Shown here: positions 11,616 to 60,497 of the stretch, one piece after another
Position numbering within the stretch: position 1 is the first letter of the stretch
Layout: each line of letters starts with the position of its first letter
DNA from: Callorhinchus milii
Lineage: Eukaryota
Assembly: GCF_018977255.1 (NCBI RefSeq)
Contig: NW_024704758.1
Location: 5,580,001 to 5,644,000 of the forward strand
Length of the DNA stretch: 64,000 nucleotides
Direction: 5' to 3'
The notes under the pieces: model-generated
What the model was told of the DNA's origin: nothing
The model's input: the letters and a program-made list of their open reading frames with translations, nothing else
Database searches by the model: none
Made by a program: the position numbers and the translations under genes

Positions 11616-11629
11616 AGTTTCACTTTCAC
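11616..11629. promoter_or_regulatory. ISRE/IRF-E upstream of gene E
   Basis: AGTTTCACTTTCAC matches the AGTTTCNNTTTC consensus; 119 bp upstream of the ATG. Confidence 0.65.
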
Positions 11630-11639
11630 TATCACCACG

Positions 11640-12185
11640 TGCCGGGGGGGGGAGAGGGGCAAAGGGGGTTTGGGGGCGAAGTGTGGAGAGGGGGCCATGG
11701 GAGGGGGGGAGAGGGGTACAGGGGAGAGACAGGAACAAGGGTGGGAATGGTGGGGGGGAGAGGGTGGCACAGGAAGGGGGAAAGAGGGGGGAGTGGGGCA
11801 AAGGGGGGTGGGGGGGGTGGCATGGGAGGGAGGGGAGCAAAGGGGGGAGAGGGGCATAGCGAGGTGAGGGGTACAGAGGGAGAGAGAGAAACCGGGAGGG
11901 GGGGGAAAGGGGGGAAGAAGGGGGCATGGGAGGGAGAGGGGGGCACAGGAGGGAGGGAGAGGGGGGCACAGGAGGGGGAGAGGGGGGCACAGGAAGGGGG
12001 AGAGGGGGGCACAGGAAGGGGGAGGGGGGCACAGGAGGGGGGCACAGGAAGGGGGAGGGGGGCACAGGAAGGGGGAGGGGGGCACAGGAGGGGGTTAGAG
12101 GGGCGCAGGAGAGGGGCACAGGTGGGGGGGAAGGGGGGAGAGATCAACAAAGGGGAGGGAGAGGACCATGCGGGAGGGGGTGAGG
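11640..12185. repeat. Polypurine G-rich low-complexity repeat (ggggcacaggaagggg...) upstream of gene E
   Basis: Read directly; it produces the spurious Pro/Gly-rich ORFs. Confidence 0.85.
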
Positions 12186-12369
12186 GGGCATTTGGTATTG
12201 GTCTTTATTACGTCTTCGGGACGTCTCAGGCCGTCGCCCACAGAGCGTGTTGGGGAGAATAATTTTGCAGGGCTCTGGGGAGAGCGCGGGGGAGTGGGAT
12301 TGACTTGGACAGCTCTTTCAAAAGAGCCGGCAGACAGAACGGGCCGAATGGCCTCCTTCTGTGCTTTAT

Positions 12370-16431: not shown

Positions 16432-16447
16432 TTAAACAAAACTCACC

Positions 16448-16761
16448 TCAACTGGAAATTTGGTACTTTATCTCCTTCACTGCTGTGGATTCAGGATGAG
16501 TAACCTCGCATCTGAGATCAGTGTTCTGATCAGAAGGATCGGGGGCAAATTCGATTTTTGTAACTGAAGCAAAGAGTCCATTCTCTGCAATCTGCGCCTT
16601 GGTGTTTGTCACTGGGCCTGTGTAGGGCACTTTCCCTTTGAACCACTTCACTTCAATTTCTTCAGGAGCGTAGTCACTCAGTGAAACACTGAAAGTCGTT
16701 TGCTTGTTTACCTCTGGAATTGTTGGATTGCATTGCATTTCGGACACGGTGGGAGCAGAAG
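16448..16761 (-). CDS. Gene D post-TM domain 6 (B-strand Cys lost; ends TGA then G|gtgagt)
   Basis: ASAPTVSEMQCNPTIPEVNKQTTFSVSLSDYAPEEIEVKWFKG...LRCEVTH. Confidence 0.82.
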
Positions 16762-19700
16762 CTGAAAGAGTGCAATAAAATATAATAAATAACCCTTGTG
16801 TTTAATATAGCACATTTCAAGTCATGAGGATGTCGCAAAGCATTCACAGAATGCACTATACAGTGTAGTGACTGACTTTATATTTTTGTAGGTGAATGTG
16901 ACAGCCAGTTTGCACACAGTAATGTCTCACAAACAGCCATGAAATGAATTACCCATTCTTATCTGAGGGATTGTTGGCCAGGACACAGAAAGGAGCTCCC
17001 TTCTCTTTTTTAATGTGACATAGTGCCACAGGATCTTTAATGTCAAGGACCTTGATGGGTGGTAGACAGGTTTAGATAGGTCAATCGATCGAGGTTTAAA
17101 GTTTCATCCGAAGGACGGCACCAACAATATAGTGCAACCCAAGTACTGCACTGGGATTTCAGATTAGATTATGAGCTTCAAGTCATGAAGTGGGACTTGA
17201 ACCCAAAACCTTCTGACTCAGAGGCAAGAGAGTGCTACCAAATGAGTTAGGCTGACAAACAGAAATAAGTGTGTGCATTTACCCCAACACAATTATCAAC
17301 ATTTTTCGATACAGGAAAAATAGAAACTTGAATAGAAATAGAAATCAGGCAAGCAAAAAAGGTACAAAATTGAATTTTGTAAAAAAACAAAAAAATATTG
17401 TTAACCCTTGTGAAGATGCTGGGCAGCTTCATTCAGAAGAAAATGAAGTGAAATAGTGGTTTGTGTACGTTATTTACACATCAGTAAATAAAGATCTCAA
17501 TACGATTTGTGGAAAAAGCACGAACGTGCCTCCCTTATTTCTTGTGATAGAGCATGGGTTCAAGCAGCATTCTGCATATGGATATGTAATGCAACAACAA
17601 CATGAGTTTATATAGCAGCCTCGGCATAGGATAACGTCTCGTAGCACTTCATATTGGTGGGGTTGAATGCCAAGCAAAGGAGAAGGAGGGGTGAATATGC
17701 ACTGTCAATGATGAAGGCTTTTAGGCAGAATTTAAAGACTTATAGAGAATTGGTGAGACGAACGAAAAGGAGGAAGCTCCAAAGGTTAGGAGCATAGTAG
17801 ATGAAGACTCCGCCATCGGTGCAAGTACACCAATAAGGGAAGGTGCAAGGGAAAACTGTTCACTGGCCTCTGTTTGTCACCCCTGTTTGAACCTACCTGG
17901 AAGGAGAAGGAGAATGTCTCTTTGAATAGGTTCTTGCAAAGCTTTATGTTTGACTAAAAAGGAAACTGTTGTATTGTGATCCAAAGCGGTTGGTGTCATC
18001 GTTAAGAAGGAAGTCAGCTGGAAATATCCATTTTCATCCTTCTCAGGCCCTATATTTCTTACTCCTTCGGAGATGGTCGTTTTACCTTGTAACCAAGTGG
18101 TTACGATTTCTTTTGGAGAAAAATTAGTCACACAACACCTAATGACCAGAGGTTGTCCATAGGACGGCTCGTTTGAATCAAACTCGATGTCTGAAATTTT
18201 CGGAATTCCTGTTTCAAGAAAGCACAAGGAAATAATTGTTTTCCCTTAGAAGTAATCATTGCACCTACTCATGAATGAAGAAATATTGTCCCACAGTAAC
18301 ATTTTGCAAGACAGTACAACAACCACAAATTACATTTGTATAGCGCCTTTCACGTGGGGAGGATGTCCCAAGGCATTGGACAGTCAGGTATTTGGACCCG
18401 AGTAGGGGGTTGGGATCAGGAGGGGTGGACTGTGGGATGGAGTTCCAAAGGGTGGAGGCAGAGAGGCTGAAGACCTGACCGCCAATGATGGGATGGGCCA
18501 GGCGGGGAACATGGAGTCGGGGCCTGCTAAGCGGAGGGAATGGACAAGTTGATATGGAGTTAGCAGGTCGCAGAGGTAGGAAGGAGCAAAGTCGTGGAGG
18601 GTTTTGAAGGTGAGGATGAGGATTTTGAACTCTATCCTCTGGGGGATGGGAATCAGTGGAGCCAGACGAGAGTGGAAACCAAATAAAAAGTATCAAATCG
18701 AAAAGGAAAAAGAACATAAAATGAACTGACTGAACAATTTAAGTTGACCCAACTGTGAAAAGCAATTTTCAAAGGACAATTGTTTTTCACATCACTTCCA
18801 TCAAATCTTAAAAGAAGAGGTTAAATGATTTTGGTAATAAATGTATGTGTGGATTTATGAATCTAACCTTAAATTTCAGACTCATGCTACTGTGTCTGGT
18901 TCCAAATTCTTGGCTAAACTGTGCCATGCTATTTTTTTTAAACAAAATATATAACTATTTGTAGATATATATTTATGCTTATCTCACACAGTATCAAACC
19001 CATAACAGAAAAAAGAGATGCAACAGGATATATGCAATCCCTTTTCCCATTACCCATCTCGCCAGACAAGCTTGATCAATCTGCACTGAACGTCTTGTAT
19101 CTTCCAGGTTATCACTTCCCACCACTCACGCTTGCAGTCAGTCAGAACCAGATGCTACTGTAATTCCTTGCTCACCGTTCTCGCAAACCTTTTGTCACCA
19201 TGCAGCAAGAAAGATTATAGCAAATCCCCAGGATATGTTTCTAAATCTTTTTTGTTCCTAACTGCACTCAGAATCAGTCAGCCTCTAATTCTCTACTTAT
19301 AACACTCATTGTTGGCCCGCCCTGTGGTGCAGAGTTCCAGCCAAAGTCATTCATCTCGGGCCACTTTGAACACAATTTGTTAATAATTGCCATTTTAACG
19401 TCAATTATTCCTAATCCGTGGATGGTTTTATGCAATGCCCTTGCACTCAATACGAAGTTGAAATACGACTTTCATGAACTCATTTCCATGGAAAGAGGTG
19501 TCATTCCACTGTTCTTGCCACAGTTTAAACTCTGGCTGCAGATGTTTATCTAGAGTAACTCAGATAGTCAAATGACCCACTGCTCCTCCATTTCTCCATC
19601 TTCTTTCCCTAGTCTTCCTACTGTTATTCAATCAATGGAAACAGCACTTAAAGTTATCGGGCAGTAATCAACAAAAACCTACATTGCCAAATGTGAGGTT

Positions 19701-22700
19701 TAGTACATCACATAAAGTTTTGTTAGAGTAAATTAGGGCATATAAATACACATGTATAAAATTCCAATCCATCTTTTGAGTTCAATCTTACCGTGCTTAA
19801 TGCATTAGTTCGCTTCAACCACCCTTCTTAAAACTAGAAACGAGTGTGACCCAGTTGTTGATTTCTCTCAGTATAAAGAAACACTTTGTGTGTCCGCCCT
19901 ACAATTGCCCTTCACAACCCATAACCTGTGCCCCCTTGGCCTGGTCCCTACGATGATCTAAAGTATCACTCTGTGTTTTCTTTGCAAAACCTATTCATTT
20001 ACATTCTCAACCAACAGCAATCCCATTTGGTGCTTATCCATAACTTAGAGTGGGGTGGGAGCTATAAATATAAGAGGTGGAAGCGCAGTATGGCTGACGA
20101 GCAGTACATTATAGAAGCAAAATGATATGTAGTCATTGGGTACCTCCAAGGTGCAGGGTGAGGAAGGCTTTTATAGGAGTGTGCGATGTTGGAAAATGTA
20201 GAACTTCAATCTTAATCTCAGCTCCATGGTCTTCTGGATTTATAAACAATTTCCACGTGGACTCGCGGTAGTAAAGACCAGTCTCTATATTTCCCTGAGG
20301 CTCAATGGATTGGATGTTAGCCTCCTCCACTCGCTCATTATTTTTGAACCACAAGAAGACAACATCCTTTGGAAAATACTTATGCACTCGGATTTGGATG
20401 GTTGCTTCTTTGCCTGGCTCTGGAAAGGTGGCTCTGATTTTAGGTATTCTATTATTGGAGATGCCACTGTTTCAACAGAGAAAGGACAACAAAGTTAGTA
20501 CTCACATCAATAAGCTGTCAAAAAAGTTGCTGAGAAATTCAAAATAGCAACGAGGAATCATTGGGCATGCATTGAACTGTGCTAAACCTCATAAGTAATT
20601 TGTTTAGAAGTTATTGCACAATGATTTACCATCCACTGACTATCTTATTTGACTGAAGAATAGGAACGTAGAAATTTACAGCACTGAAGATGGCCATTTC
20701 AGCCCATTATGTCCATGCTGGCTCTTTTGAAGAGCAATCCTTAAGCAGTCCCAGGCTGACACTCTTCACATTTAAGCTGTAAATAAGTGGCTATCATTGT
20801 ACTCACCCATTGGAATGAGCGAACACTCAGCTCTTCTACACTCTCCAGGACTATCAGAACGCATTTCACAATACAGGTGCTTTCCGAAATCTTCTCTGAC
20901 CACAACGAATTCCAGACGGCTCTTAAAGTAAAACAAGTTATCTTTCCCGCTGGTTACCTCTGCGTCAGGGATCATTTCAGCCAAGATTTCGTCATCCTTT
21001 CTCCAAACAATTATAATATTTCTTGGAAAAAAGGAATGTACTCTGCAGGTGGCGATCAAGATTTCGTCCGCAATGGGGGACTTTGGATGCAGTATAATGT
21101 CATCAAAGTTCGGCAAAGCTGACAAATAAAATAATAATAATATTAATAATACTTGCATCTGATAAAGTGCCTCATCTCGTCACAGCAAAGCCCCACAAAC
21201 AGCCATGGAGTGAATGATCAATTTTATTTTGGGGGATTGTTGGCCTGGACACCAGGAGAAACTCCCTTCTCTATTCGATTAGTGCCGCAGGATCTTTAAA
21301 TGTCTACCCGAACAGGCAGGTGGCACCACATTTGAATATTTATCTGAAGGATTGCATCTCTGACAATGCAGCAGCCTGCAGTACTGTATTGGAGTGTCAC
21401 CTTCCAGTAAATCCTGGGAAGCATTTTGAGACTCTTCCTGCTGTTAAAGACGCGATATCAAATATAAGAAATATTTATTATCAAATGTAACAAATATTAT
21501 CATCATCATCTCATTTTAAACACAATGGTCAGAAAATGCACACCGTACCTTTAACAGTTAGGCTGACTTCTTTGGTTCTTGTTATACTTGTTGCTGGATG
21601 TGTTATTTTGCAAATGTACTGTGAATTGTTGTCTTCAATTATGGTTGGAATAAACTTTAAAATACTAGTGATACTGTAAGTACCGTCTTCATATCTCAAC
21701 TCATTCAAATTGTGGACATATTTGGGCCTCTCTATTTCATTTCCAACCGTCTCACTCAGTTTCCCTGGTTCAACCTTCACAATTTCCACTTCCTCGTTGT
21801 TATGTCTTTTGTACCAGGAGATAGCCAGTGGCCTTGGCTTGAATCCATTAATTGGGCAAGTCAGAGCCAGGACTTCTTGGTGGATGACACGAGGCGGCAT
21901 CACAATGTCAGTCAACATCGGTGGGACTTCGAGTAAGAAAGAAAAATTAAAGTTGCACGTGTTGTGGCAAAAAAAAACTTACACTTTGAAACACATTTGG
22001 AACTCAATTCTTTTTAAACACTGGTTTAAAATCTTCACTTCAATCTGCAGGTACAGAAAATCAGAGGTTGCTGGTCCTAGTTGACCTCTCCCTCCTTAAC
22101 CCATGAACTGAGGGCAATCTTATAGGCTAAAGCTCAGTGGAATTTTCGGCTCTGAGATTTTTCCCATATTTCCCAATATTTTCCCAGATATTCTGTTGAT
22201 TAAGCTCGCTTATCAGAGTTATCAGAGCTTTGATTGACAATGCTGAAATAATGACGAGGCCTAAAATCACTGAAAACCTTTTTGTAAAAGTCTTATTAAA
22301 GCCATCAATTTTAACTTCTCAAACAGAGTACAACAAATAAGACACTGGTTTCACCAATAACTGGTAATAATAGTAATTTTTACTTACCTCCTTCCACATT
22401 CAGAGTGACACTTTCAGAAAAAAAGCTTTCTGTGCTGTCATGACGTACGTGAAGCGTGAGAATAGCCTTGTCATCCTTAAAAATATCAAGCAGCAATTTA
22501 ACATGACACGTGACACTGGAAGTCCCATCACTATGTTGTTCAATAGATGATACAATATTGAAAGTCTGATCTAAGGTCTCACTGTCAGAAAGAAGTAAAC
22601 TCTTGACATCCTCTGTGGACTCTTTGTCAGACCACTTGTATATTGTGACTGTATTCGATTCCCTTCTTTGTAGTAGCCATTCAATATTAATACCGTCCGG

Positions 22701-25700
22701 TCTGTATCCAGAAATCTCACAGTCCAAGAAAGCTTCTTGATGATGTAGAAAGTGAGCTGGCTTGGTGATATTTGTAACTTTTGGAGGAACTAAAATAACA
22801 TTGAAAAGCACACTTGAATTTATTTGTTCTGAGGATGCCACATCAAAAACACCATACACATTACAGTAAAGTTCTGCAAAATTCTTTGAGATGTTTCAAT
22901 CATATGTTAAAGTGTTATATCAAATGCAAGTCTTATTATTAATAATAGAATAAAAATACATATGATATATAGATTAAATAGTCAATATGCGAATTGTTTT
23001 ATTGAAAAAGAAATAATTGAAGTGCACATACTACTATAAGACATGTAAAGAATTGTTTTACCTTTTTTGATTCTAAGGTAAGCATAAAATGCTCCTCCCA
23101 GGATTAGTGCACATAGCAAGACAGTAATGAACACGCTCGTCACTATTCGTCCTACTGGTATAACAATATCTTTCTCTGAGGGGAAGACAAAAGGACATAT
23201 TTAGCTCTACAGTGGGTTACGAATATAACTTGTCTGGAAAATGGAAACCAATTCCAATTCAACACCTGAAATTCCACCTGTCAGATCATCTTGTCTTAAA
23301 ATTTAAGGTTGCGCAGAATTATAGAAAACTCCTTTGGAAGCTGTTTTTTTGATGGTTCTTAAAAGAACACAGCTTCAGATTGAAATTGAATAGAAGAAAT
23401 TTGCACAATCCTGTGCCATTTCAAATCGTAAGACAGAATGGTCTTACAAATTGCAGAGTTGCATGCCTCCTGAACAGTGTGAAAGTCTGTGATCACTTTC
23501 TGCATCTCTCCCAATCTACTTCCCAATTTCATCCTTCTCTCTGCGAATTGCAACCATTGCATGAACCTTTCTGTATGCCTGAAAATCTCTGATAGCTCAC
23601 TCAGGGGACTGTTCCTGAGCAGGAATGACTGGTAGTCAGTATCGAGCATGGAGGCACGTCTTAGTTGAGCCCAATCCTATCCTCACTTGGCGTCCAACAG
23701 AAGCACAATTTCCGGCTGGGAGGTGGAAGGTTATTAAACATGGATGAAAGACTTATCCCCTTCCCAGACTAAGGACACTGAGACTAACTACATTGGACCC
23801 AAAAATACCCATACTAAACTCACATATTTTCACTTCCACCTTCGCATTCTAACACAAACTACTTTTTGGAGATTGGTGTACGTTTCTGAAATTAAAATGG
23901 TACCTTTGACAGTCAGGAGAACGTCCTTGCTCAAACCACCAACGAGTGTCCTATGGTTTACAAGGCATGTGTAGGTTTTGCCGCTGTCTGTAAGATCTGG
24001 TCGGAGGGTCAGGCGGCTGGACAGGTTGAAAGTTCCATCTTCGTTTTTCACTGGGGATTTTCTGCAGACCGACTTTAAAACCTCTTGTTTTCCATCCCCG
24101 CTGTTGTGAATCCACTTCACATCAATTTTTAAAGGATAGTAGCGGTTGATGTTGCACATGATTGACTTCTCTGTGCCGTTCTCGATTATGATACTAGATT
24201 GATCTACACTCACCTTTGGTTCAGCTGTGAAGATGAACAGAAATCTGCGTCAAACATTTAAATATTTAAAACCGTCATTTTTAAAACTTAAATTTGTGTA
24301 TTTTTTCTGCAACTTTCTCTCCGTACCTACTGAGTCTTTTGAATTATGCAACCATGGCACTAATCATTGATGGAGCCTGGACCTCCACAACCCATACACC
24401 TCATATGAGATACAGGACTGGAGTGGCTTCTTTACAAGAGGCCAAATCAAAAAACTTCTGGGCATCACAAGAAATCCTCTGTATGCAACAGATCTACAGG
24501 GGTAAGAACCTATAACCAACCTGATCTACCTATATTGGACCATGATCAAACTACATAAATTCCAAGTAAAATACATTCTATCAAAAAGCTTGTTGCTTGC
24601 CCTCATCCTCCTAAAATTCCTTCACATTACACCTTCACTCTCTACTTTCAGATCCCTCCTCAAAATCAGAGTATTTTGACTCTACTTTCTGTCAAGAACC
24701 TCCCCCACCACCCCCCCCGCCCCCCCACACACACACCCCACCTCCATTTGCCCCTATTAAATGCTTCATGACATTCTCCTAAATGACAGGCGCTGTGCAA
24801 GTACAAGGTCTTGTTTGAACATAGAATACCAATAACATAACAAGATCGCAAAAATTAGAATAACACAGCATGAAAACATTATTTCCTTTTAAAACCTAGT
24901 CAGAATTTATTCTCCCTTTTGAAAAATCCCATTGATCAAGCCACTTACCTGAAACAAACATTTCCGCGTTTCCCCTTCCAGAATCAGGTGTGATAAACAC
25001 AACACATTCATACTGTCCTTCATCCTGGAATCCCACACTCAACAGAAACAGGGAAGCAATGCCTTTCTTCAATTTATCATCGGATATCTTTGCTCCCTTT
25101 CGATGAGGTGTGTGTGCACTGTTTACAAATTTGTATACCAGTTTCCTGGTGACATCAGGAGGCTTTGAGAAGTACCATTCAACACTAACACTTGCAAGGT
25201 CAATGGTTCTCGATTCATAGCCAGGTACCTGACATTTCAGTAAAGTATCCTTGTTTACAGCGACCCTCACAGGTCCTGAATCCATCAGCACATTGAGGAC
25301 ATCTTCCACTGTGGTAATTTAACAAAACAGCTAAGGTTAGTCCACAAATCATTTCATCATAAAAAACACAATGCTAGATACATCATAAAGAAAGAAAAAT
25401 CCACTCTTCAGATATTAAAATGTCTTGTTTTATTACCCACTTATTAACCTGTTCTATATGGGGCAACCAGGATAAAATAATCAGACTTTCAATGAATTTT
25501 ACACGTCACAAAACGTGCCCAAATGAGTTAGTGAAGGGGAGGAAATTTCACCTGAGTCTAAACATAAAGTGCTTGAAATGCCACTCAGTCTTTGCCTGTA
25601 ACATCAGCGGTTTATATTACAGAGTGGGAGCAAGTCTCAAAGTGTTTCATACAAATGACTGGGAGCCTGAGCTGATGCGGGGGGGGAGCTGAGGAGCGGC

Positions 25701-27009: not shown

Positions 27010-27098
27010 TGACTGTCTGGGGATCTGGGCTGTGGTTGTGGAGATGTGCTTCTCCCCCTCTCCTCCTCCTCCTCTCTCTCTCTCTCTCTCTCAGTTCC

Positions 27099-27110
27099 TT
27101 TCACTTTCAC
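27099..27110. promoter_or_regulatory. IRF-E/ISRE core upstream of gene D
   Basis: TTTCACTTTCAC (GTGAAAGTGAAA on minus); 90 bp upstream of the ATG. Confidence 0.6.
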
Positions 27111-31542: not shown

Positions 31543-32911
31543 AATTATGCAAAAAGTGTAAATTCTAACAATCACCCTTGGGTAAAAAATCTATAATTCA
31601 GCTCAATTTAATTAGACTTATAATTAATTACTGCAATACCACTGTTAAGCACTCTGAGACACTACCCTGAGTAAAGTGCGCTATATAAACGCAGGTTGTT
31701 GTTGTTGTTACTTTTTTTTTTCGTCAGCCGGGTCAGACAGACAATGCGGAAACCCATCACGATGCTTAAGAGTATCCAAATCATTCTGAGTTTACCATGC
31801 ATCCCACCTACATATGGAAATCCCAGAGATAGATTATTGGAATGGAATGCACACTCTTTCCCTGGAATTGTTATTCCACGCTGTAGCTAACAAACATAAG
31901 CATTCGATACACTGAGCCAGACTCACACAAAAAGCCTGGTTGATACCAGTGCCCCTTTCAACTTCTAATTTTTTAATCACAAAATCACAAGATTGGTTTG
32001 GATGAAGAAGTCTCTTCGGCCCATCCAATTTCATCTTTCCAGAACACCCACCACACTGTCTCCCCATCACATTAAATAAGTACTGCAACCTGGTCTCTAC
32101 CATCTTTCCTGTTCCAGTCGATCATTACCCTTAATCCTCTTGACATGGAAGGCTCTATTCAAATATAATTTGCTGTTGTTGTTGTTAATCGCATCTCCAT
32201 CTGAACTCTAATTCAGAACTATTCTTATATTTTTATTCTTTCTTCAAATCCAAGTGGAAAATTAGTGTTGAACATTTTTCCTCTAATCTACTACTAGAGA
32301 TGATTTTGATTTTCTCACTAAAATCAACTTCCAAACCCTCTGTTGCGTGGAACCTGCACAGTAGTGTTCAAAGCAAATTGAATTCATTTGTGTGAAGAAG
32401 TCTGCCCTCGTTCTTAACTTTTCTTCCTTGCTATAATTATTTCCCCAGCACTTTCCAAATCCCTCTGTAGCTATTGGTGCAGTAAATGAAGGTTTTCATT
32501 TGAAATTTCTTTAATTTCTAATTTCAAATGATCATACATTTCAAGCAGATTGAATGAATCTAAATTGCAAAAATCTGCAAAGAATGTACAGCACGGAAAC
32601 AGGCCCTTTGGTCCAACCAGTCTGTCCCGGTGTTTATACATCATTCCACACCAGTCTTACCCCCAATTTATGCGAAGAGAGAATTACTTCAATTTTCAAA
32701 GTTGCTAAACAAACTCAGTTCCTCAGGGACATCCAAGCCAAACCAAGGCAAATCAACTGCCAGACAGAAAATATAAAAGCTAGATTATATCAATGCATTA
32801 GGCTTTCTTTCCGAAGTCACAATAAGGATTAGGAGTCCAAGCATGATACACAGGCACAATGACATTTCACTTTCGGATTCATAAAATAAGGTGCATGCTT
32901 GCTCCAAGGCT

Positions 32912-33216
32912 TCAACTGAGTTTCAGATGAAAGAATTTGCTAATCGGGTCCATCTCAGTCATCACATCACATTGCAATAGGATTCCATCATCCTCCTTCT
33001 CTGCTGTAAAAGTTAGTGCACACTTGAAACTTCCATCTGGAAGGGCTATCTTTTTAACAACATCTTCCTTTTCATAAGGGTATACACCCTTAAACCAAGT
33101 GATGTGCGTGCTGTCCATGGGGTGCCCTTTAATAGTGCAGGCCACAGTAACAGGCTGACCAGCTTTCGGATTTTCTGTTTCACACCTGATGTCCGAGACA
33201 AAATCCATGTCCTCTG
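32912..33216 (-). CDS. Gene C post-TM domain 7 (terminal)
   Basis: ttttttcccag|CA GAG GAC; VACTIKGHPMDSTHITWFKG...LQCDV...FHLKLS then TGA. Confidence 0.82.
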
Positions 33217-46556: not shown

Positions 46557-46645
46557 GTCTCGAAGCTTCACCCTGGGATATTTTCGCCAGCCATCTCTGT
46601 TCGAAGCCATTTTATAAATCCACCAAAATTTCTGTTTAAGAATTA

Positions 46646-46657
46646 AGTTTCGCTTTC
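46646..46657. promoter_or_regulatory. ISRE upstream of gene C
   Basis: AGTTTCGCTTTC, exact consensus; 90 bp upstream of the ATG. Confidence 0.65.
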
Positions 46658-48521: not shown

Positions 48522-48872
48522 CTATGTAACATGTAGCTCTGTGCTCTTCTCTTCTTTTTCTAGGGTAATATAAACAGTCCAGGTGTATAGTCCTCTCTCT
48601 TCCAGCTATATATTTGACTGATAAAGGGAGGCATTTCCTTCCAATAATTAATGATCAAAAATTTTCACTCCAGGTCTTGTAACTGTATGATTCCCTTCAT
48701 TGAAATGTGTACAAGAATTTCTTTACTCCTGTTTGCCGAAAGTTCCACTTAACAGCTATAAAAGTGATGTCAAGTTCTGATTTATTGTAACTGGTCACTT
48801 TGCATTTCAGGAGAACATCTGTATTTGCCAAAACTTTCTTTGGGGAGGGAAATTTCTCAAAATCTAAAACAT
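48522..48872 (-). pseudogene. Dead copy of the gene B V exon
   Basis: Aligns with 57949-58299 ([16 protein letters not shown] shared). The acceptor AG has become AT, a frameshift gives a stop at 48697, and there is a further TAA in the original frame. The donor is retained. No leader or C1 exon found nearby. Confidence 0.85.
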
Positions 48873-48949
48873 ATTTATACAAATAAGATATTTCAAACAG
48901 AACATAAGTGGACATTAAACATCTTTCAACATCTTTCATGGGAGTCATA

Positions 48950-49375
48950 GGTGTTTAAAGAGGCACGATTTTAGGCAGGATTTAAAGAGAGAAAGAGAGG
49001 TGAGATGGAGTGGTAAGGGGAAGGAGATCCACAGTTTACGGGTATTGGAACTGGAAGCTCGATTACTGATGTGGATCCAGCCTAAGTTTGCTGAGCAGAG
49101 GAGGTGGGCAGAAGAGTAGGGTAGGAGATCAGAGCAATAAGGGAGTTTCACAGAGTGGATGGATTTGTAGGTGAGGATGAGAACCTTGAAATTGATCCAC
49201 TGTGAAATAGGGAGCCAGTGGAGACTGGCAAGGGCTGGGAAGGTGGGTGTGCGGAGTTTGGTGCAGGTGATGATGCAAACAGCACAGTTTTGGATGAGTT
49301 GCAGTTTGTGAATGGTGGAGCTAGGGAGACCAGTGAGGAGTGAGTTAGAAAACAGTGGGACAGTCAGATACAGTT
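48950..49375 (-). mobile_element. L2 LINE 3' fragment
   Basis: Translates [17 protein letters not shown]...LHWLPISQWINFKVLILTYK, the typical L2 ORF2 C-terminus. Confidence 0.8.
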
Positions 49376-50369
49376 TAAACTCTGGGAACAATAATATGCA
49401 GGATATACAAATATGCCTGAAAACATCACAGACAGATTAAGGTTGTAAAGTAAATAAATATTTATTGTAGTTTTGGAATGACAAGGCAAAGTTACAAGGG
49501 ATTTTACATTCACGGCAATATAAACTCATCAAACAGAAATTATACAACGAGCTTTGCTGGAAAGCAGCTTTCTCCAAACTGCCTTCCTAAACAAAATCAA
49601 TTTCAAGTCAAATTTGCCTGATTTCCAATCAGTGATCAAATGGTCAAAAAGGCCACTACAAAGAGTGTTACATGATGGCAGCAATCATGTTTGAAAAGTT
49701 AATTGACTTCCAATAAGTAAGATTTTAATCACTATAATTCATATATGCAGTATTACATTTTACATCCAAAATTGATTTTGTATATGCAAATATTATGGGC
49801 AGCATATTTCCTTGTTTCTTAACTTCCCATGAATTGTCTCAACCTGGTTTATTTGGTAGCATTCATGTGTCTGAATCAGAAGGTTGTAGGGTCAAGTTCC
49901 ATATTGGGACTTTGAGTTCATGGTGTCAGCGGACATGCCAGCATAGTGTGGGACCAGTGTTGCATAGACCATGATTGTGTTCTTTGGATGAGATGTTAAA
50001 CTGGGTTTCATCTGCCTGTTTAACTGTATGTTAAATAATAATCCTTGTATTTAATACAGTGCCTTGAGAAGTCTCAAACTGCTTCACATGATTTACTGTT
50101 GAGTGTAGCAACTGTGTATTTTGCAGGCAATTTAAAGATTCCATGCTACTATGCAAAGAGAGAAGGGAGTTGTTGCTAGTGTCTTGGGCAATAATCCTCT
50201 GGATAAAATTGGTCATTAATTTCATGGAATCTTTGTGGGGCATTGCTGTGTGAAAATTGACCACATTGTTCGCCTACAGAATATTCACTCACAAGTAAAA
50301 ATCTGTGCGCTTTGAGATGCAAAAATAGCAAATGCGGGGATTATTATTATTTTAATGTTAAGGAACAGA

Positions 50370-51200
50370 AATTATTTTCAGTCAAACAGGCAGAGGTTGG
50401 GAGGTGCCAGGATATGAGGGTATTTGTAGATAACTGTGAGGATCTTGAAGTCGATACATTCTGTGATAGGGAGTCAGTTGAGGCTGGAGAGGACTGGTGT
50501 GATGGGTGTACGGAGCTTAGTGCAGGTGAGTATACAAGCAGTGGAATTCTGAATTACAGTTGGATTGTATGGATAGTGGTAGTGGAAAGTAGTGGTAGGC
50601 GAGGAGTGCATTGGAATAATTCAGATGGGAGGTGATGAAAACATGGACAATGATCTCAGCTGTATTGGTTGTGAGGTATGTTTGGAGCGGGCAATGTGAT
50701 TGCGGTGGAGGAAAGCGGTACTAGTTAGGGATCGCATGTGGGATAGGAAGGACAGTTGGGGATGGAACCTGATAGGCTGGTGAGGTTGAGGAAGTCAGAG
50801 CCACAGGAGAAAAGATATTGATGGGAGCCAAGGAGTATGGCTTCCGTTTTGTCAACATTCAGCAGCAGGAAATTTGTGATCATTCGGGTACAATTGGTAA
50901 TGGTTGGGCTGTCAAAGTTCTGGGAATTGGGGTACTAATGAAACCAAGCAAGGATGGAAGTGATAGACTCGTGGAGAGGACTTGAGCTGCAGAGGGCAGG
51001 ATGGGCAATAAGTGAGAAGAGTTGAGTGATCATAGTGAGAAAGAGAGGAGGGGTATTTGGTAAGGAGTGCAGCTTGGGTCAGGGGCTGCAGCCAATACAT
51101 GCACACCAAAACTAGAAGCAAGGGATCAGTGGGGCATGCTCAGGCTCACTGCTGTTGGAGAGGACGAGGGGAGACAGATTGGGATGGGTGGGGGTGTGTG
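50370..51200 (-). mobile_element. Decayed L2-like LINE fragment
   Basis: Purine-rich plus strand with L2-like motifs; no intact ORF. Confidence 0.5.
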
Positions 51201-51665
51201 GTGAGAGTTGAATAGCGCAGGAAATAGTGCTCATAATATAACTGTATTCATTAATTTAGGCACAGGTTTAGATTAATAAAGTTCACCAAAAAGATTTGTG
51301 GTTTGTTGGATTTAATGAGGTAGTAACAGTAACCAGAAAAATAAAAAAAACAGCTTTTTACATAGGCTATGAAATGACTTCACACAACAACTTGTCTCCA
51401 GCCTGCATCATTCCTCTTCGTACCTAATCTGCTCAGGTTTGTTTTCACCTTCAAAGTTTAGTTCCTTCCTCAGTTCTTTCGTTGATCATTTTGTTCACAT
51501 TTAAGAAAATCTTAACTTTTTGTTGACATCAGTGCAAAGGCAACATTGGGTTTAATAAAATTAGGTGGGATTCAATGAAGCCATGGTGGGCAGTAATGTA
51601 AAAGGATGCCATGGAATCAGGGGTGGTGTACAATCAAGGAGGGATTCAGTAGATGACTTGGTAGA

Positions 51666-53179
51666 TTAAGGGAGAGATTCAATAAAAACAGCGCTAGGTG
51701 CAGTGGAAACAGAGTTTGAATCAATGGAACCACATTCAGGTTCAATGAAAACAGAACTGGGTTCAGTGGGAGTTGGTTTAGTATCAGTGGGAGATGGTTC
51801 AGTGGGTGTTGGCTTAGGGTCAGTTGGAGGTGGTTTGCATTCAGTGGAAGTTGGTTTAGGGTCAGTGGGAGATGGTTTAAGGTCAGTGCGAGATGGTTCA
51901 ATGGAAGTTTGTTTAAGATCAGTGGGAGGCAGTTTGCGTTTAGTGGGAGTTGGTTTTGTGTCAGTGAGAGTTGGTTTAGAGTCAGTGGGAGATGGTTCAG
52001 TGTCTGTGGGAGGTTGTTTAGGGTCAGTGGGAGGTGGTTTAGCATCAGTGGGAGGTGGTTTAGCATCAGTGGGAGGTGGCTTAGGGTCAGTGAGAGATGG
52101 TTTAGGGTCAGTGGGAGGTGGTTTAGGGTCAGTGGCAGATGGTTTAGTGTCTGTGGGAGGTGGTTTAGGGTCAGTGGGAGATGGTTTAAGGTCAGTGGGA
52201 GTTGGTTCAGTGGAAGTTTGTTTAAGGTCAGTGGGAGGTGGTTTAGCATCAGTGGGAGGTGGTTTAGGGTAAGTAGGAGGTGGTTTAGGGTCAGTGGGAG
52301 GTGGTTTAGGGTCAGTGGGAGTTGATTTAGGGTCAATGGGAGTTGGTTTAGGGTCAGTGGAAGGTGGTTTAGGGTCAGTGGGAGGTGGTTTAGTGTCAGT
52401 GGGAGGTGGTTTAGGGTCAGTGGGAGGTGATTCAGGGTCAGCGGGAGGTGGTTTAGGGGACGGGGGAGGTGGTTTAGGGTAAGTGGGAGGTGGTTTAGTG
52501 TCAGTGGGAGGTGATTCAGGGTCAGCGGGAGTTGGTTTAGGGTCAGTGGGAGTTGGTTTAGAGTCAGTGGGAGATGGTTCTGTGTCTGTGGGAGGTTGTT
52601 TAGGGTCAGTGGGAGGTGGTTTAGCATCAGTGGGAGGTGGTTTAGCGTCAGTGGGAGGTGGTTTAGGGTCAGTGAGAGATGGTTTAGGGTCAGTGGGAGG
52701 TGGTTTAGTATCAGTGGGAGGTGGTTTAGGGTCAGTGGGAGGTGGTTTAGCGTCAGTGGGAGGTGGTTTAGGGTCAGTGGGAGGTGGTTTAGTGTCAGTG
52801 GGAGGTGGTTTAGGGGAGGGGGGAGGTGGTTTAGGGTAAGTGGGAGGTGGTTCAGTGTTAGGGTAAGTATGAGATGGTTTAAGGTAAGTGGGAGGTGGTA
52901 TAGGGTATGTGGGAGTTGGTTTAGTGTTAGGGTAAGTATGAGATGGTTTAAGGTAAGTGGGAGGTGGTATAGGGTATGTGGGAGTTGGTTTAGTGTTAGG
53001 GTAAGTATGAGATGGTTTAAGGTAAGTGGGAGGTGGTATAGGGTATGTGGGAGTTGGTTTAGTGTTAGGGTAAGTATGAGATGGTTTAAGATAAGTGGGA
53101 GGTGGTATAGGGTAAGTGGGAGGTGGTTTAGGGTACGTGGGAGGTCGTTTGTATTCAGTTGAAGTTGGTTCAGTTGGTT
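51666..53179 (-). CDS. Gene B terminal exon: coding 21-bp minisatellite (KPPPTDP / KPPPTYP repeats)
   Basis: Strong acceptor tttttttttgcttcacttgttgtttcttttaattag|AA CCA. I checked the frame codon by codon and it is open to TAA at 51666-51668. It ends ...[15 protein letters not shown]. Confidence 0.78.
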
Positions 53180-56100
53180 CTAATTAAAAGAAACAACAAG
53201 TGAAGCAAAAAAAATTAATTTGTTTTAAAAATAACAAAAGTAATAATCATTTTACTATGCATTACCAATTCACAGGTTTTACTGTCCAACTGAGAATTAT
53301 GTTTAAATTTTCTAGTGATTTCAGAATAAATTCTATAACACTGGTAATGGAGGCTTTTAATTTCTATCAGGCAGAGCCTCACAGAAGGCTAACGTTTCTA
53401 ATCACAGTGGTCTTGCTTGTTTCTTGGGAAGGCAACCTTTTCCCTCAGCACTGTGCCGCTCATCACACTCCCGGTATGCAGGGTGGTTAGCTAGGTGGTG
53501 CAGGTAAGTTCATTCCAATGATATAACTGACATAGAGAATGCGACTTTATATAAGCGAGTGATGAAATAAAGGTGGCGGGGGGATCCTTTATTCACATTT
53601 TGTATGGGAAACTGCCGGTATATTGACAGCATGATGATATAGACATGTGATGATATAAGCCAGGGTCTTATTATCGGGAGTGCACTATAATATTTTTCAT
53701 GCTGCATTAAATAGTTTGCAATAATTACAGTTACCAAATCCATTCTGAGAGCAATTTTTACTTTTTCAAAAAATGTCTTTCCTGAAGTCTCAACTTGTCT
53801 GCCTCCTTATTGTCTGATTTGTTAAACAAAGGCCTTTTCGTTCACTCAACGATGGGAATATTTTATTCCAGTGGGTCTTGTAATCATCCAGGTGCACCAA
53901 TAAAAGACCATTGCAATGGTTAAAACTCAAGTCTCTGAGAACCTATTAGATGTGATATTGTACAGAAAGCCTAGTCTCAACAGTAGATCCACTGATCTAA
54001 CACTTATCCAAATATAGTAATTACCTTCTTCTTCACCCATCTCCTTAGATTTCTTTCCTTTTCTCAAAAATATGGTTTGTTCTTCAGTTTGAGCACCTGA
54101 TCCATTAGAAAGAACAACAATGGAAGTAAGGCAACAACAATGGATGGAAGATTTTTACAGAACAATCATGCATGAAAAGATGTCTAGTAACTTTGTGCTG
54201 GATGAATGGCAAGGTAATCTTCGCATTTAATACTAATTAGAAATATTTGAACATTAGTGCATTAATTTTACAGGATCTAGATTTTTTTCAATTGCAAAGA
54301 GTAGTGTTCATGTCAACTATGTTCCATTGCCTGGCATTGCAATATCACTTAAAATAAATACCAGATTTCAGGAGCACGTAAATGTAAATTTCACCTTTTT
54401 CGACACCATTCACATTAATAATAATCCTTGCATTTGATATAGTGCTTTTCATGTCTTCTAGATGTCTCAAAGCGCATCACAGAATATATTGTAAAGTGAA
54501 TTGACTGTATATTTTGTGGGCGAAAAGCGGCAGTCAATTGCGCACAGCAGTATCTCACAAACAGCCGTGGATGAGTGACCAAATTTTTATTGTTTTTTTT
54601 TTCCTTAAGGGATTATTATCAGGCATTTGGAGTAAGGAAACTGGCCTAAGGTTTCACCTTGCCAGGAATCGAACCCAGGTCTCTCGCTTGCAAGGTGAAT
54701 GCTCTATCCACTGAGCTACAGGACTCCACAGGACTTTGGAGATATCCCAAGTTGCTTGACAGTCCTGTCTTGCCACCCAAGCTGGCGGTGGTAGCAGAGG
54801 GGGATGAGGAGGAGGAAAATGATCAAAGGGGCATTCAGAGCAAGGTCTTGAGACAGGCGTTCAAAGATGGAGGGAAGGAACGAGTTGAAGGAACTCTGGG
54901 ATGGAGTTCCAGAGAGTGGGGGCAGCTAGACTGAAAGCTCGACTGCCGAAGGTGGGTAGGGGACATGAAGCAGGCGGGTGCTTGCTGAGGAAAGTGGACA
55001 GATGGATCAGGATGGTTGAGGAAGTCTCAGCGATAGGGTGGGGCAAGGCTGTGAAGGCATTTGAAGATGAGGATAGCCTTTCAGAGTTCTGGATAATCTT
55101 CAACTTGTGTAGGGAAGAGTTGGATAGTCTGGCAAGTAGAGTGTTGAAGTAGTCAACCCTGGATGTGATAAATTTATGGATTTCGGTCTCAGAGGCCCGA
55201 AGGGAGAAGCAGTGATGGAGATGGGCAATATTACTGAGAGAAAGCTGAGCGAGTCAACACATAGATGTGGGGTTTAAAGAACAGTTGGGAGTCGAACAAG
55301 AGCTTCACCTTCCTCTTTACTCTTACATAAGGAACACATTATGCCACAACTTTTACCCAATAACCAAATGCAGGGTGAATAGGAGTTAAGCCACCAATGA
55401 AATGGTTTCAGCTCCACATGAAGTATAAATGTAGTGATGAAATCATTCCTGACTCCTTCCCGAAACAGTCACTTCAAATTTCATATGAGATCCAAGTGTT
55501 TGCTCACCAATTTCAGTCTCGAAAGAAACATTTCAAAGAAAACCATTTAGGAGGAATATATAATTTTTAAATGATTATATAACATCTGCATTGTTTCTTC
55601 ATGAAAAATATCTTACCTTTAACTCTATAATTTTTCCACCAATAAATCCCAATGGCTGCACATATGGCACATAGCAGACCACCGATTACACCTCCAACTA
55701 TTGCTGGAATTGGGTCTGCAACAAGAAATGATGAAACATAGATGATTTGTGCCACGGCAATAAAAAAAAGTCAGAGGTTTTAACTATTCATCGTCATTAG
55801 TTACCTTCAAAAACCTGTTTCTGTATCACCTTTTCTCTCACTCTGGGCAACAAGAACCCTGGCTGACTGAATCCTTTCCCTACTGAGGTCAGTATCATTT
55901 TATTACAATAATATTAACCCAAAATTAATAAACACATACAAAATGTAGAACACTTTTATTTGTCCTGTATTTCCTTTATTTTTCCACATTCTTTCCCTGT
56001 CTCTGGCACCAAGCAGGGATTGAGGGAGAGTGGCTGTGAGAGGTGATTGTAGGCATGGTCAAAGAATAGGTTTACAGGAGTGTTTGAAAAGACAAAGAGG

Positions 56101-59100
56101 TGGAGGGATTTAGGGAGGGAATTCCAGAGGGATGGGTGGCTGAAGGCTGATCTGTGGATGGTGACTGGAAGAGCAGCTGAATGGATGAGTGGGTAGGAAA
56201 GTGAAGCTGTAGAACATCACACAGATATGGAGGGGTTTGTTGCTGAGAGTGAGGACCTTGAAGATGATCCATAGAGAGACAGAAAGTCAGTAAATCCTGG
56301 TGAGGATGGGAATGAAAAGCACGTGTGGGTAAAGAAGCAAATAGACAAATTTTGGATGAGCTTGTGAATTGTAGAGCTGGGTGAAGCTGGTGAGGAGAGC
56401 ATTAGAGAAATCCAATTTCGTAATGAAGGCACCTATGAAGGTTTTAGCCACATTGAATGTGGGATAGGGATAGAGCCAGACAAAGTGGCTGAGATGAGGA
56501 GGATAGAGTGGTCAACAATGTCAAAAACAGCAAAGAATGTTTAAGTTGGATGAGTGGCCCTTGGTCACAGACTAAATGTACATCATTTGTATCTTAAACG
56601 TGGGCTGTTTTGGTGCTATGAGTGGGATAGAAGACTACTTTATATTAGTACTTTATATTAGTGAGGGATGTAAAATCTATAAACAGGTTTAATTTCTTTA
56701 CACTCTCTCATTTATCCCTGGTTTAAGTGAGCACAAGCAGTGGTAACGTAAATCAAAACTTACAAGAGTAACATTGCATTGCTCTCAAAATACAGCTTAC
56801 CGTGATTTGATGTTACAAATGATATTTCTGCTGCAAAGTTATCAGGAAATGTTTCATACTTCACAACACATTTATATTTTACATTGTCATCGATTTCTTC
56901 ATCCCCTGACGATACAACATTCAATGTACTGGAAACACTGAAGGCCCCATCTTTGTTCCTAACAGGGGTTTCAGTTGAAGAATCATTTAAAACATGTTCT
57001 GTTTTTCCTTGTGATGTCTTGAACCAACTGATCTCAAGTTTCTCAGGATAAGATCTGATAACATCGCATCTGATTGACCTCGATGAATTCTTGTGACCAG
57101 CAGTGGATAAGATGATCTCTGGCTGATCTGTGGAGAAGAAAAACAGGTTATGCAAGATGAAAATGAGTTGGCAAAACTACATCAAACTGAATTTTACTGA
57201 TTTTTGCTCAAAGGGGCAATGAATAAACACAAGCCACCCCACTTTAGGAAATATGTCAAGGTAGTAGAAGGGATTGGGTGGGGGGGTTGCAGAGGAGATT
57301 TACTGGGATTATACTTGTAATGAATGGTTTGACCTATGAGACTGAAGGAACTGTGACTTTCTTTGTTGGAACGCAAAAGGTTGAGAGGTGACCTGATAGA
57401 GATCTTTAAAATAATGAGGGGTTTGATAGAGTAAACAATCGGGAGAAATTATATGCGCTGGTCAGTGAGTCAGTAACTAGAGAGCATCAATTTTAAGTTA
57501 GTTTGTAAATGAGCAAATGGGGAGGCTAGGAGAAATAATTTCATGCACAGAGTAGTTAAGATATGGAATGCCCTGATGGGTGCAGTGGCTGAGGCAAAAT
57601 CCACACTGTCCTTCAAGAGGGAACCAGAGAGATAGCCTACAAAGAGTCCACTACAGGGGGATGGAAAACGAGAGGTAAATGGGGCTGAAAGGATTGCTTT
57701 TGAAGGAGCAGGCACAACATGATGGGCCAATTGCTCTGTGCCATAAATTTCTATGGTTCTAAGTCCCAATAAAACCATCAGATACTGGAGTTACACAGAA
57801 TTATATGGTACGAAAACAAGTAGTCCATGTCGGACATATGCCAGACTAATGAGATTATTTTCTTTTTCACTGTCAACAGCCCTAAAACAATGAGTTTGAC
57901 CATTCTATGTAGAATTTCAGGCCATGAGATATGTTTTGACAGACTTACCTATCACAAGCAGCTCTCCGGTCACTTCTTCTTTTTCTGGGGTAATATAAAC
58001 AGTGCAGAAGTATACACCTCTCTCCTCCAGCTGTATGTTTGGTAGATAAAGCGAGGCATTTCCTTCCAATATTTCATCATCAAAGATTTTCGCTCCAGGT
58101 CTTGAAATTGCATGAGTCCCTCCGTTGAATGTGTATAGGTCTTTTTGTACTCCACTTGAATAAATCACTTTCCACTTAACAGCTACAAATTTGATGTCAA
58201 GGTCTGATTTATCATAATTAGTTGCTTTACATTTCAGGAGAACATCTGTATTTGCCAAAACTTTCTTTGGGGAGTGAAATATCTCCAAATCCAAGGCACC
58301 TTTATACAAATCAAATATTTCAAAGAGAACATTAGTGGGCATTAAACATCTTTCAAAGGTGCCATAGACATTTAAAAAGATAAGATTTCGCCCTCAAATT
58401 ACACAGTCAATTCACTTTACAGTATATTCTGTGAAGTGCTTTGAGACCTCTCAATGACGCGATAATGCACCATATCAAATGCAAGGATTGTTATTATTAT
58501 TTACTTCCTTTGCTCAGCAAACACTGGCCTGCTTCATGTATCCTGCCCTATCTGCCCTTTCAGCCATTCTGCCCATGACCTCTGGCACTCCCAATGTCCC
58601 TCCCTCTCACTCCCTGAAACTGTAGGGTGTAACTGAAGTGAAAGCTGAGATCCAATTAGAACATGAATAACCTTACACGATAGAACTCAACAACCAGGAT
58701 GACACTACATTCAGGTTCCTGACAATAACCCCTATGAATCCTACCTCAACTTTCTTTTCTTAAAAAAAACTACACATCACAAAATACTCCTCAATTCTAA
58801 GAATCAAACAATTTAGCAATAACACTTCAACTCCTGCCTGTATCCATTTATCGCCATGCATTAGAAAGGGGGAAAATGTAAACAAAAAAATGCTCTTTTT
58901 ACATTATTTACCTGATGAACAACTGAAAGACATGATGACTGCACACAAAGTTAAGATCTTCATCTCTAACTTAGTAAATCCAATATTCATTGCATTATCC
59001 AGGCTTTGGAGTCTTTTTCACTAAACCTCAAATCCATGTTCTGACCCATTCAGCTTTTCCCTAACTCCGCAACATTGCTCACCTCCACCGCCACCCTTGG

Positions 59101-60390
59101 GCGACCGAAAGCCTCATCTATACGTGTATCACGTCCAGGCTAGACTATGGCAACTCTCTGCTCACTCGACTTCCCAACTCTTCCCTCCACAAGCTGCAGA
59201 CCATCCAGAATTCTGCAGCTCATGTTCTCTCCTGCACCAGGCTTGTGAGCCTACAACAATAATAATAATCCTTGCATTTGGATTTGACATAGTGCCTTAT
59301 CAAGTCTTTGAGATGTCTCAAAGCGCTTCACAGAATATACTGTAAAGTGAAAGGCAAAATAAAGAGAATTCATTACTAATATGAATTGACTGTAATTTGT
59401 AGGTGAAATGCACCCAAGTGTCCCACAAACAGTTATGAATTGAGTGATCCAGTTTTTTAAAAAAGGATTACAAAACCATTTGCATTTGTATAGCACGTTT
59501 AACGCTGGGCAGAGTGCCAGAACCATAACCCCCGGAAAAGCGATCCGCCAACCGACTAACAAGGCGTGTGGGTTGGTCGGGTTTAAGAATATCACAAAGG
59601 TAAGGAGGGGCAAGACACTAGAGCGATTTCAAAGTGAGGACGAGGATCTTGAACTCAATCCTCTGGGGAATGGGGAGCCAGTGGAACCGGGAGAGAATAG
59701 AATCCTGTAGTTAGGGTTAGAGTTAGTGCATTCACCTCGCAAGTGAGAACACCCAGGTTTGATTACTGGACAGGCACAGTCTCCTTCCGCTCCAGAAAGG
59801 ACAAGTACATGAATAACTTTATAATATAAACTAACAAAAAGGTACATATAAGAAACAGGAATAATTTCTTGACAAATGAACTCTGTGCTTTCTATTCCAC
59901 CACGGATTTGCCATTGCAAATGTCTGTAGTTACCAGTTATAATGGTAACTTGAGAGATATTTGCAAAGAGTTAGCGAACAAACAAAGGTGAATACCAAGG
60001 TTACAGTTTGAAACAATAAGTTAGCGAATGGAAAACAAAACCATAAATGCTAACACTGGTAAATGTAATATTGTAGTTTGCTCTAAAGGCTTCTTACTAT
60101 TTTGTGGGTAAGTCGTTTACAATTCATAGCGACTTCCGTAGCTGCAACAGTAACTTTAGACATCTGCAAAAGTTAGCGATTGATTAATGAAAATAAAAGA
60201 TTTCTATTTAAAAAATATTATAAATAGCGAATGGAAAACGCAAGAGAGGCTGGAGTGAAGCTGTGCTGATCCTCCGCTCATTCCTTCAACCTACTAAGGA
60301 TTGCGGACGGGAAAGACATGGGGGTCAGTGATATTTACCTGATATTGAGATAAACGAGACAGCAACAGCACACAACACTAGAATCGCCAT
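51666..60390 (-). CDS. Gene B: SP-V-C1-TM receptor with a roughly 530-aa cytoplasmic tail dominated by Pro/Thr/Tyr repeats; about 804 aa
   Basis: Exons: 60339-60390, 57949-58299, 56801-57127, 55617-55715, 54025-54096, 51666-53179. Total 2415 nt = 805 codons, all phase-1 junctions. Confidence 0.8.
54025..54096 (-). CDS. Gene B first cytoplasmic exon
   Basis: ggatcag|GT GCT CAA...GAA G|gtaatt; [24 protein letters not shown]; 72 nt. Confidence 0.7.
54416..54727 (-). mobile_element. Young SINE, full length
   Basis: Same consensus. Confidence 0.86.
55617..55715 (-). CDS. Gene B transmembrane exon
   Basis: [34 protein letters not shown]|gtaaga; 99 nt. Confidence 0.88.
56801..57127 (-). CDS. Gene B extracellular C1 exon
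   Basis: [19 protein letters not shown]...[10 protein letters not shown]...YKCVV; donor gtaagc; 327 nt. Confidence 0.88.
57330..57760 (+). mobile_element. CR1-type LINE 3' fragment
   Basis: ggttgagaggtgacctgatagag...aagatatggaatgccctg...gatgggcc. Other CR1 3' ends at about 2230-2370(+), 7770-8035(-), 34790-35200(+), 38120-38510(-) and 42570-42830(-). Confidence 0.68.
57949..58299 (-). CDS. Gene B V-set exon
   Basis: VLLKCKA...VAVKWK...[23 protein letters not shown]; donor gtaagt; 351 nt. Confidence 0.9.
60339..60390 (-). CDS. Gene B signal-peptide exon
   Basis: [18 protein letters not shown]|gtaaat; 52 nt, phase 1. Confidence 0.82.
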
Positions 60391-60485
60391 GCTTCCCTCC
60401 ACAAAAGCAGGATTTTCTTAATAAAACAATTTGCCACAATTATCCCAGAGTGCTGACGATCAGCGTCTGTACCTGGAATTCACCC

Positions 60486-60497
60486 TTTCACTTTCAC
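60486..60497. promoter_or_regulatory. IRF-E/ISRE core upstream of gene B
   Basis: TTTCACTTTCAC; 96 bp upstream of the ATG. Confidence 0.6.

Follow-up and report, generated by a model that had tools for sequence, protein, structure and literature searches.

A stretch of 64,000 nucleotides (nt) from Callorhinchus milii (contig NW_024704758.1, positions 5,580,001 to 5,644,000; hereafter the window) carries four B7-H6 (NCR3LG1)-like genes of the immunoglobulin superfamily, all on the minus strand, and the question raised by this locus is what to make of a short motif, resembling an interferon-stimulated response element (ISRE) or IRF element (IRF-E), that stands ahead of every one of them. Each gene comprises a leader exon encoding the signal peptide followed by IgV, IgC1 and transmembrane (TM) exons, and the leader ATGs of genes 1 to 4 lie on the minus strand at 11497, 27009, 46556 and 60390. 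The element is real, non-random and fixed in position. Its four copies are listed below as read in gene sense, with the position of the motif 5' end relative to the leader ATG.

11616 to 11630, minus strand: ISRE/IRF-E of gene 1, AGTGAAAGTGAAACT, with an ISGF3-type GAAACT end; core at -130
27097 to 27110, minus strand: IRF-E of gene 2, GTGAAAGTGAAAGG, of the positive regulatory domain I (PRDI)/IRF1 type without the CT end; core at -99
46646 to 46657, minus strand: ISRE of gene 3, GAAAGCGAAACT, ISGF3-type; core at -101 from the ATG at 46556
60483 to 60498, minus strand: IRF-E of gene 4, AGTGAAAGTGAAAGGG; core at -105

A previous sequence-only reading had placed AGTTTCACTTTC at 11616, TTTCACTTTCAC at both 27099 and 60486, and AGTTTCGCTTTC at 46646, and all four strings are indeed found there; the distances that it gave to the ATG (-119, -90, -90 and -96) also hold when counted from the 3' end of the motif. 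Across the two strands of the 64 kb there are exactly four matches to the IRF-E consensus GAAASYGAAAS, compared to an expectation of 0.47 +/- 0.72, and all four are the sense-oriented promoter copies. TTTCNNTTTC is likewise enriched, with 16 matches versus 5.6 +/- 2.1 expected, and none of 100 shuffles reached 16. The probability that four randomly placed matches would all land in the four sense windows is p ~1e-11. A fifth sense-oriented GAAAGTGAAA is present at 32865-32874, outside any promoter and some 40 nt past the stop codon of gene 3, and could be a chance occurrence (0.4-0.5 matches are expected per window) or a 3' element.

The sequence surrounding the element has not been kept. When the four promoters are anchored on the motif, identity amounts to 61-78% in the core and 16-33% in the flanks, while MAFFT finds no alignable sequence among them and leaves the motifs themselves out of register, in agreement with the earlier description of the flanks as unrelated. 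The division into two GC-rich and two AT-rich promoters is borne out as well, with a GC content of 0.67, 0.53, 0.39 and 0.39 in the 150 nt 5' of the motif for genes 1 to 4, respectively. The GC-rich appearance of the first two promoters is due to G-rich minisatellites with units of 35, 20-53 and 55-57 bp (10312-11236, 11908-12138 and 26245-26682), which occupy intron 1 and the upstream region of genes 1 and 2.

The same element recurs outside of C. milii. Seven orthologous loci were compared, those of Heptranchias, Pristis, Hypanus, Scyliorhinus, bichir and two ranoid frogs; coelacanth, Mobula and salamander were not among them. Five of these loci contain the following promoter copies.

Heptranchias: GAAAGTGAAACG, 5' end at -119 from the leader ATG
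Pristis: GAAAGTGAAAGT, 5' end at -82 from the leader ATG
Hypanus: GAAAGTGAAAGA, 5' end at -56 (-77 from the second ATG)
Scyliorhinus: AAAAGTGAAACT, with one mismatch, 5' end at -84 from the leader ATG
bichir: GAAAGTGAAACT, 5' end at -17 from the annotated ATG and about -89 from the ATG that starts the hydrophobic signal peptide

In the Heptranchias, Pristis and Hypanus loci the promoter copy is the sole match in 41-60 kb, and over all loci the element is found in eight of 11 promoters, compared to a background chance of 2.8e-4 per promoter. The lineages that carry it separated over 400 million years ago. The fetched bichir locus has another perfect GAAAGCGAAACT at 75516-75526, at its very edge and 9.9 kb 3' of the gene, where no leader follows within the 80 nt that were available, and it may belong to the promoter of a neighbouring gene. 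One of the frog loci has an intronic match within A-rich, repeat-like sequence. The Heptranchias orthologue of gene 3 does not lie inside the fetched Heptranchias locus.

Judged by these comparisons, the element is under purifying selection as a cis-regulatory site, because it has been kept while the surrounding non-coding sequence was randomised, both among the paralogues and among the shark, ray and bichir orthologues. That the motif has stayed at one promoter position, in deep paralogues as well as in these orthologues, lends strong independent support to a cis-acting function, and the element is almost certainly a working promoter switch.

Which factors might operate the switch depends on the type of site. 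The canonical ISRE core, GAAANNGAAA (PMC6954429), is matched at all four C. milii promoters. GAAANNGAAACT is enriched at IRF9-bound, ISGF3-dominant sites, sites of the (AAGTGA)n PRDI/IRF-E kind are bound by IRF dimers, and the long consensus WBVGGAAANNGAAACT is not enriched at IRF9 sites (PMC6954429). GAAANNGAAACT is present in gene 1, gene 3 and bichir, has its first base changed in Scyliorhinus, and is replaced by a GAAACG ending in Heptranchias. Thus the sequence-only reading, which had regarded the motif as a site for ISGF3 and IRF1/2, was right about the ISRE core of all four copies and about the ISGF3-preferred GAAANNGAAACT of genes 1 and 3, while genes 2 and 4, which lack the CT, look like sites of the IRF-E/PRDI kind and not of the ISGF3 kind. 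Overall the reading is supported, with interferon inducibility of the cluster still an inference.

Taken together, one sense-oriented, promoter-proximal element of the IRF-binding type, maintained by selection, may be regarded as shown for each gene, and it is probable that this element confers infection- or interferon-driven expression on the encoded ligand; IRF- or interferon-driven expression is the most likely mode of regulation of these B7-H6-like genes. Under the proposed mechanism, a single sense GAAAG(T/C)GAAA(C/G), situated in the proximal promoter some 100 nt ahead of the ATG of the signal peptide, would be bound by IRF-family dimers, which would activate the ligand genes upon infection or in the course of interferon signalling. 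The acting factor would be IRF1 in response to interferon-gamma and IRF3 or IRF7 once a virus is sensed, while ISGF3 (STAT1-STAT2-IRF9) would act on the GAAACT-type copies of genes 1 and 3, Scyliorhinus and bichir, with which the GAAACG copy of Heptranchias may be grouped. The products could then mark stressed cells for NKp30-type receptors.

Several observations weigh against this account. The copies of genes 2 and 4 resemble IRF-E/PRDI and are without the 3' CT favoured by ISGF3, and no copy among the four genes matches the full ISGF3 consensus WBVGGAAANNGAAACT, the 5' four bases being TAGT in gene 1 and GAGA in gene 3. The site is not universal, since the two ranoid frogs retain only the first half-site, GAAAGTAA(C/T)TTC, at the same place. 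No shared NF-kB site, interferon-gamma-activated site (GAS), CCAAT/Y box, X1/RFX site, cAMP response element (CRE), Sp1 site or ETS-IRF composite element (EICE) partner was detected in the 400-1500 nt searched at genes 1 to 4. Human B7-H6 is known for its induction by stress, MYC and TLR/TNF and is not known to be a classical interferon-stimulated gene (ISG). Furthermore, a literature search with the gene identifiers LOC103174894 and LOC103174895 returned no paper, and one combining B7-H6 with ISRE or IRF returned nothing relevant; these searches yielded neither expression or binding data nor a publication on how the genes are regulated.

The element could also be a genuine, selected IRF-family site that serves constitutive or lineage-specific expression and not interferon induction, through the basal activity of IRF1/IRF2 as in MHC class I promoters, through IRF4/IRF8 in myeloid or lymphoid cells, or through repression by PRDM1/BLIMP-1. 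Genes 2 and 4 as well as Pristis and Hypanus have GAAAGTGAAAG(G/T/A), the PRDI/IRF-E type devoid of the CT preferred by ISGF3; genes 1 and 4 contain AGTGAAAGTG, the PRDM1/BLIMP-1 consensus; and the ray copies are followed within 2-3 nt by a GGAAG ETS core. However, a GAAAC(T/G) ending is found in five of nine full copies, and this explanation partly merges with the preferred one because IRF1-bound IRF-E sites are interferon-gamma responsive too. It is an unlikely alternative to interferon induction. The idea that the motifs are due to chance, or are neutral relics of tandem duplication or of a shared repeat, draws on the facts that the genes are paralogues, for which a shared ancestral promoter is expected, and that the window is rich in short interspersed nuclear elements (SINEs). 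It is effectively refuted by the retention of the core amid flanks at random identity in paralogues whose proteins are only 25-38% identical, by the occurrence of the motif, there as the sole match in the locus, in orthologues separated for more than 400 million years, by its position outside the SINEs, and by chance probabilities of 1e-11 to 1e-26.

A different objection concerns the start of transcription, as the motif might lie 3' of it, within the 5' untranslated region, and any action that it has would then be exerted on the RNA or as a downstream element. The coding start of gene 3 according to NCBI is an upstream in-frame ATG at 46610, which follows the motif by only 36 nt, and the annotated bichir ATG is 5 nt from the motif 3' end and 17 nt from its 5' end; transcription of these N-terminal extensions would require start sites at or upstream of the motif. 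Both upstream ATGs, however, add non-hydrophobic extensions before a normal signal peptide, as typically happens when a program extends a model to the most distant in-frame ATG; that of gene 3, moreover, overlaps a consensus TATA box, from which a start site downstream of the ATG is predicted, and the motif is strictly sense-oriented and resembles a DNA consensus. A location downstream of the start site is accordingly quite improbable. The TATA box of gene 3 has the following position.

46610 to 46618, minus strand: TATA box (TTTATAAAA) of gene 3, located 27 nt 3' of the ISRE and overlapping the ATG with first base 46610

From this box, transcription is predicted to begin about 30 nt ahead of the ATG at 46556, which would put the ISRE at about -60 to -70 relative to the start site. 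The extension encoded from 46610 precedes the signal peptide of gene 3, and the NCBI model of bichir likewise begins upstream, at 10001 in the coordinates of the fetched locus, compared to about 10073 for the signal-peptide ATG. Because the gene 3 ATG overlaps the TATA box, the N-termini of both NCBI models are probable over-extensions.

Among other motifs nearby, a CACGTG E-box is found in the gene 1 promoter, 4 nt upstream of the 15-mer and 9 nt upstream of the GAAA core. The GAS-like TTCACAGAA, which occurs upstream of all four genes, was considered as a shared regulatory motif and rejected, since it sits inside tRNA-Ala SINEs, one of which lies 250-1100 nt upstream of each gene. The IRF motif copies of the four genes lie outside the SINEs. 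In total, seven tRNA-Ala-derived SINEs (heads at 1748, 7384, 12373, 27264, 29721, 48136 and 54654) and several minisatellites are interspersed in the window.

The genes themselves were delimited by means of stop-to-stop open reading frames, Pfam and splice-phase analysis, and have the following exons.

2830 to 11497, minus strand: gene 1 (B7-H6-like); leader 11497-11425, IgV 9979-9647, C1 9383-9060, TM 8264-8148
gene 1, C-terminal part, minus strand: six C1 exons from 7203 to 2833, then a stop; all exons phase 1-1
16448 to 27009, minus strand: gene 2, LOC103174894 (XP_007885687.1); leader 27009-26946, IgV 25308-24949, C1 24224-23904, TM 23175-23062
gene 2, C-terminal part, minus strand: six C1 exons from 22789 to 16451
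32912 to 46556, minus strand: gene 3, LOC103174895; leader 46556-46487, IgV 44280-43930, C1 43171-42847, TM 42244-42131
gene 3, C-terminal part, minus strand: six C1 exons from 41548 to 35700, an acidic exon at ~33.85-33.9 kb and a terminal Ig exon at 33216-32915
55617 to 60390, minus strand: gene 4 (short); leader 60390-60339, IgV ~58299-57949, C1 57127-56801, TM 55715-55617

The RefSeq models XP_007885687.1 (LOC103174894) and LOC103174895 isoform X2 map onto the window exon by exon with 96-100% identity, and the UniRef model A0A4W3IK41 of C. milii is the letter-for-letter product of two exons in the window. XP_007885687.1 and LOC103174895 X2 use the leader exons and splice junctions given above, which corroborates the leader-exon calls of the sequence-only reading for genes 2 and 3. 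The same reading had spoken of four complete genes, and while the element is present at all four, completeness is doubtful for gene 4, of which only the leader, V, C1 and TM exons were identified, with no C1 array after the TM exon. A minisatellite with a 21-bp unit, repeated about 66 times (51763-53150), fills the site where the C1 array of gene 4 would be (region 49000-55600), and a partial, gene 4-related V exon at 48700-48954, comprising the 5' half only and having neither leader nor motif, looks like a pseudogene fragment. In the fifth C1 exon of gene 2 (~20420-20430, minus strand) the window has CCTTTCCAGAG, while XP_007885687.1 requires one extra C; this 1-nt frame difference sits in a run of C, the frame being kept here only via a downstream acceptor, and may reflect either a genuine variant or a misassembly in one version or the other. 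The possibility that the C1 array forms a separate gene was rejected, as the distance from the TM exon of gene 2 to the next C1 exon is about 270 nt, all exons are phase 1-1, which is the case for every exon of the array genes, and RefSeq joins them.

The assignment to B7-H6 rests on the ranking of PDB matches and on the naming of amphibian homologues as NCR3LG1 by NCBI. Pfam detects V-set and C1-set domains, and among solved structures human B7-H6 (3PV6, 4ZSO, 6YJP; E 1e-13 to 1e-24) comes first for every one of the four V-C1 ectodomains in the PDB comparison, with B7-H3 and TAPBPR ranking below it. A single TM segment follows the C1 domain, as expected of B7-H6/NCR3LG1. Full-length homologues of equal architecture exist in sharks, rays, coelacanth, bichir, salamanders and frogs, and some of the amphibian ones bear the name NCR3LG1. 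The ectodomains of genes 1 to 4 are mutually 25-38% identical at the amino acid level, so the paralogues must be very old. Furthermore, gene 2 clusters with elasmobranch orthologues (50-53% identity, support 97/98) and gene 3 has orthologues of its own in Heptranchias, skates and bamboo sharks, and the duplications therefore predate the chimaera/elasmobranch split.

The layout of the encoded proteins is unusual in that the TM exon (8148-8264, 23062-23175, 42131-42244 and 55617-55715, minus strand) is placed between the first C1 domain and six to eight more C1-set domains, and no C-terminal TM segment is present. This mid-protein arrangement is kept from chimaera to amphibians. The RefSeq X2 isoforms of Carcharodon, Cetorhinus and Bombina omit the TM exon exactly (...TVK|VPPKV...), hence it behaves as a cassette exon, and one promoter may give rise to both a membrane-anchored form and a long secreted form. 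Human B7-H6, the NKp30 ligand, has an IgV-IgC1 ectodomain followed by a TM segment in common with genes 1 to 4, and its tail is gag-like with signalling motifs. C. milii differs from it in having a multigene cluster, in the TM-skipped isoforms predicted for this family, and in the six to eight C1-set domains and stop that follow the TM segment in place of the gag-like cytoplasmic tail. Human B7-H6 is not known to be driven by an ISRE.

The presence of one V and many C1-set domains in genes 1 to 3 is reminiscent of UrIg and UrIg2 of cartilaginous fish, which are non-rearranging, combine one V with many C1-set domains, and in the case of UrIg have a VJ-type V with a split leader and a C-terminal TM segment (PMC12227049). 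The C domains of UrIg2 are weak PDB matches to the C1 array (9dmx, E 1e-7). Membership in the UrIg/UrIg2 group was rejected, because the V domain is of the B7 type, the TM segment is located between C1 domains 1 and 2, and a C-terminal one is absent; in contrast to UrIg/UrIg2, the B7-H6-like family also reaches coelacanth, bichir and amphibians. Separately, 'NLRC3-like' models of Carcharodon and Heterodontus join CARD, NACHT and LRR with V-set and C1-set domains, the latter part being related to the C1 array, with 24-27% identity across roughly one third of the query, and these could be true fusions or merged neighbouring genes.

With regard to known promoters, the element has the same GAAANNGAAA core as the ISRE/IRF-E sites of mammalian and zebrafish IFIT genes and the PRDI of IFN-beta, with the GAAACT end in genes 1 and 3. 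As in ISG promoters, it is single, sense-oriented and probably promoter-proximal, and the gene 3 copy precedes a TATA box as is seen in IFIT promoters. Unlike the IFIT genes, which usually have two or three copies, the C. milii promoters have one each, and genes 2 and 4 possess the (AAGTGA)n/PRDI type. PD-L1, BTN3A, MHC class I and tapasin are immune-recognition genes of the immunoglobulin superfamily in which proximal IRF1/ISRE sites mediate interferon induction; compared to their promoters, the surroundings of the C. milii element yielded neither an enhancer A/NF-kB site nor an SXY module. In fish ISG promoters, ISREs drive induction by interferon and poly(I:C) (PMC3688568).

The ISRE mechanism is textbook knowledge, and what is new is its attachment to an uncharacterised, deeply conserved family of B7-H6-like genes; the footprint appears unusually clean, while the mechanism that it suggests would be conventional. 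The element lends support to the leader-exon calls, draws attention to two public gene models whose N-termini are probably over-extended, and provides an experimental handle on these genes in the form of a single 12-nt site to mutate. Its retention across chimaeras, sharks, rays and bichir offers a testable link between the interferon/IRF system and natural killer-type ligand display at the base of the jawed vertebrates. It may tentatively be proposed, as a broader idea that is somewhat doubtful at present, that the ancestral jawed-vertebrate B7-H6/NKp30-ligand gene was wired to IRF/interferon through one proximal ISRE, which cartilaginous and basal ray-finned fish would have preserved for more than 400 million years and which would have decayed in frogs and perhaps also in mammals, and that its one promoter would supply both a membrane V-C1 ligand and a TM-skipped secreted V-(C1)7-9 protein. 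If this is true, these genes would represent an 'induced-self' system with a switchable soluble form.

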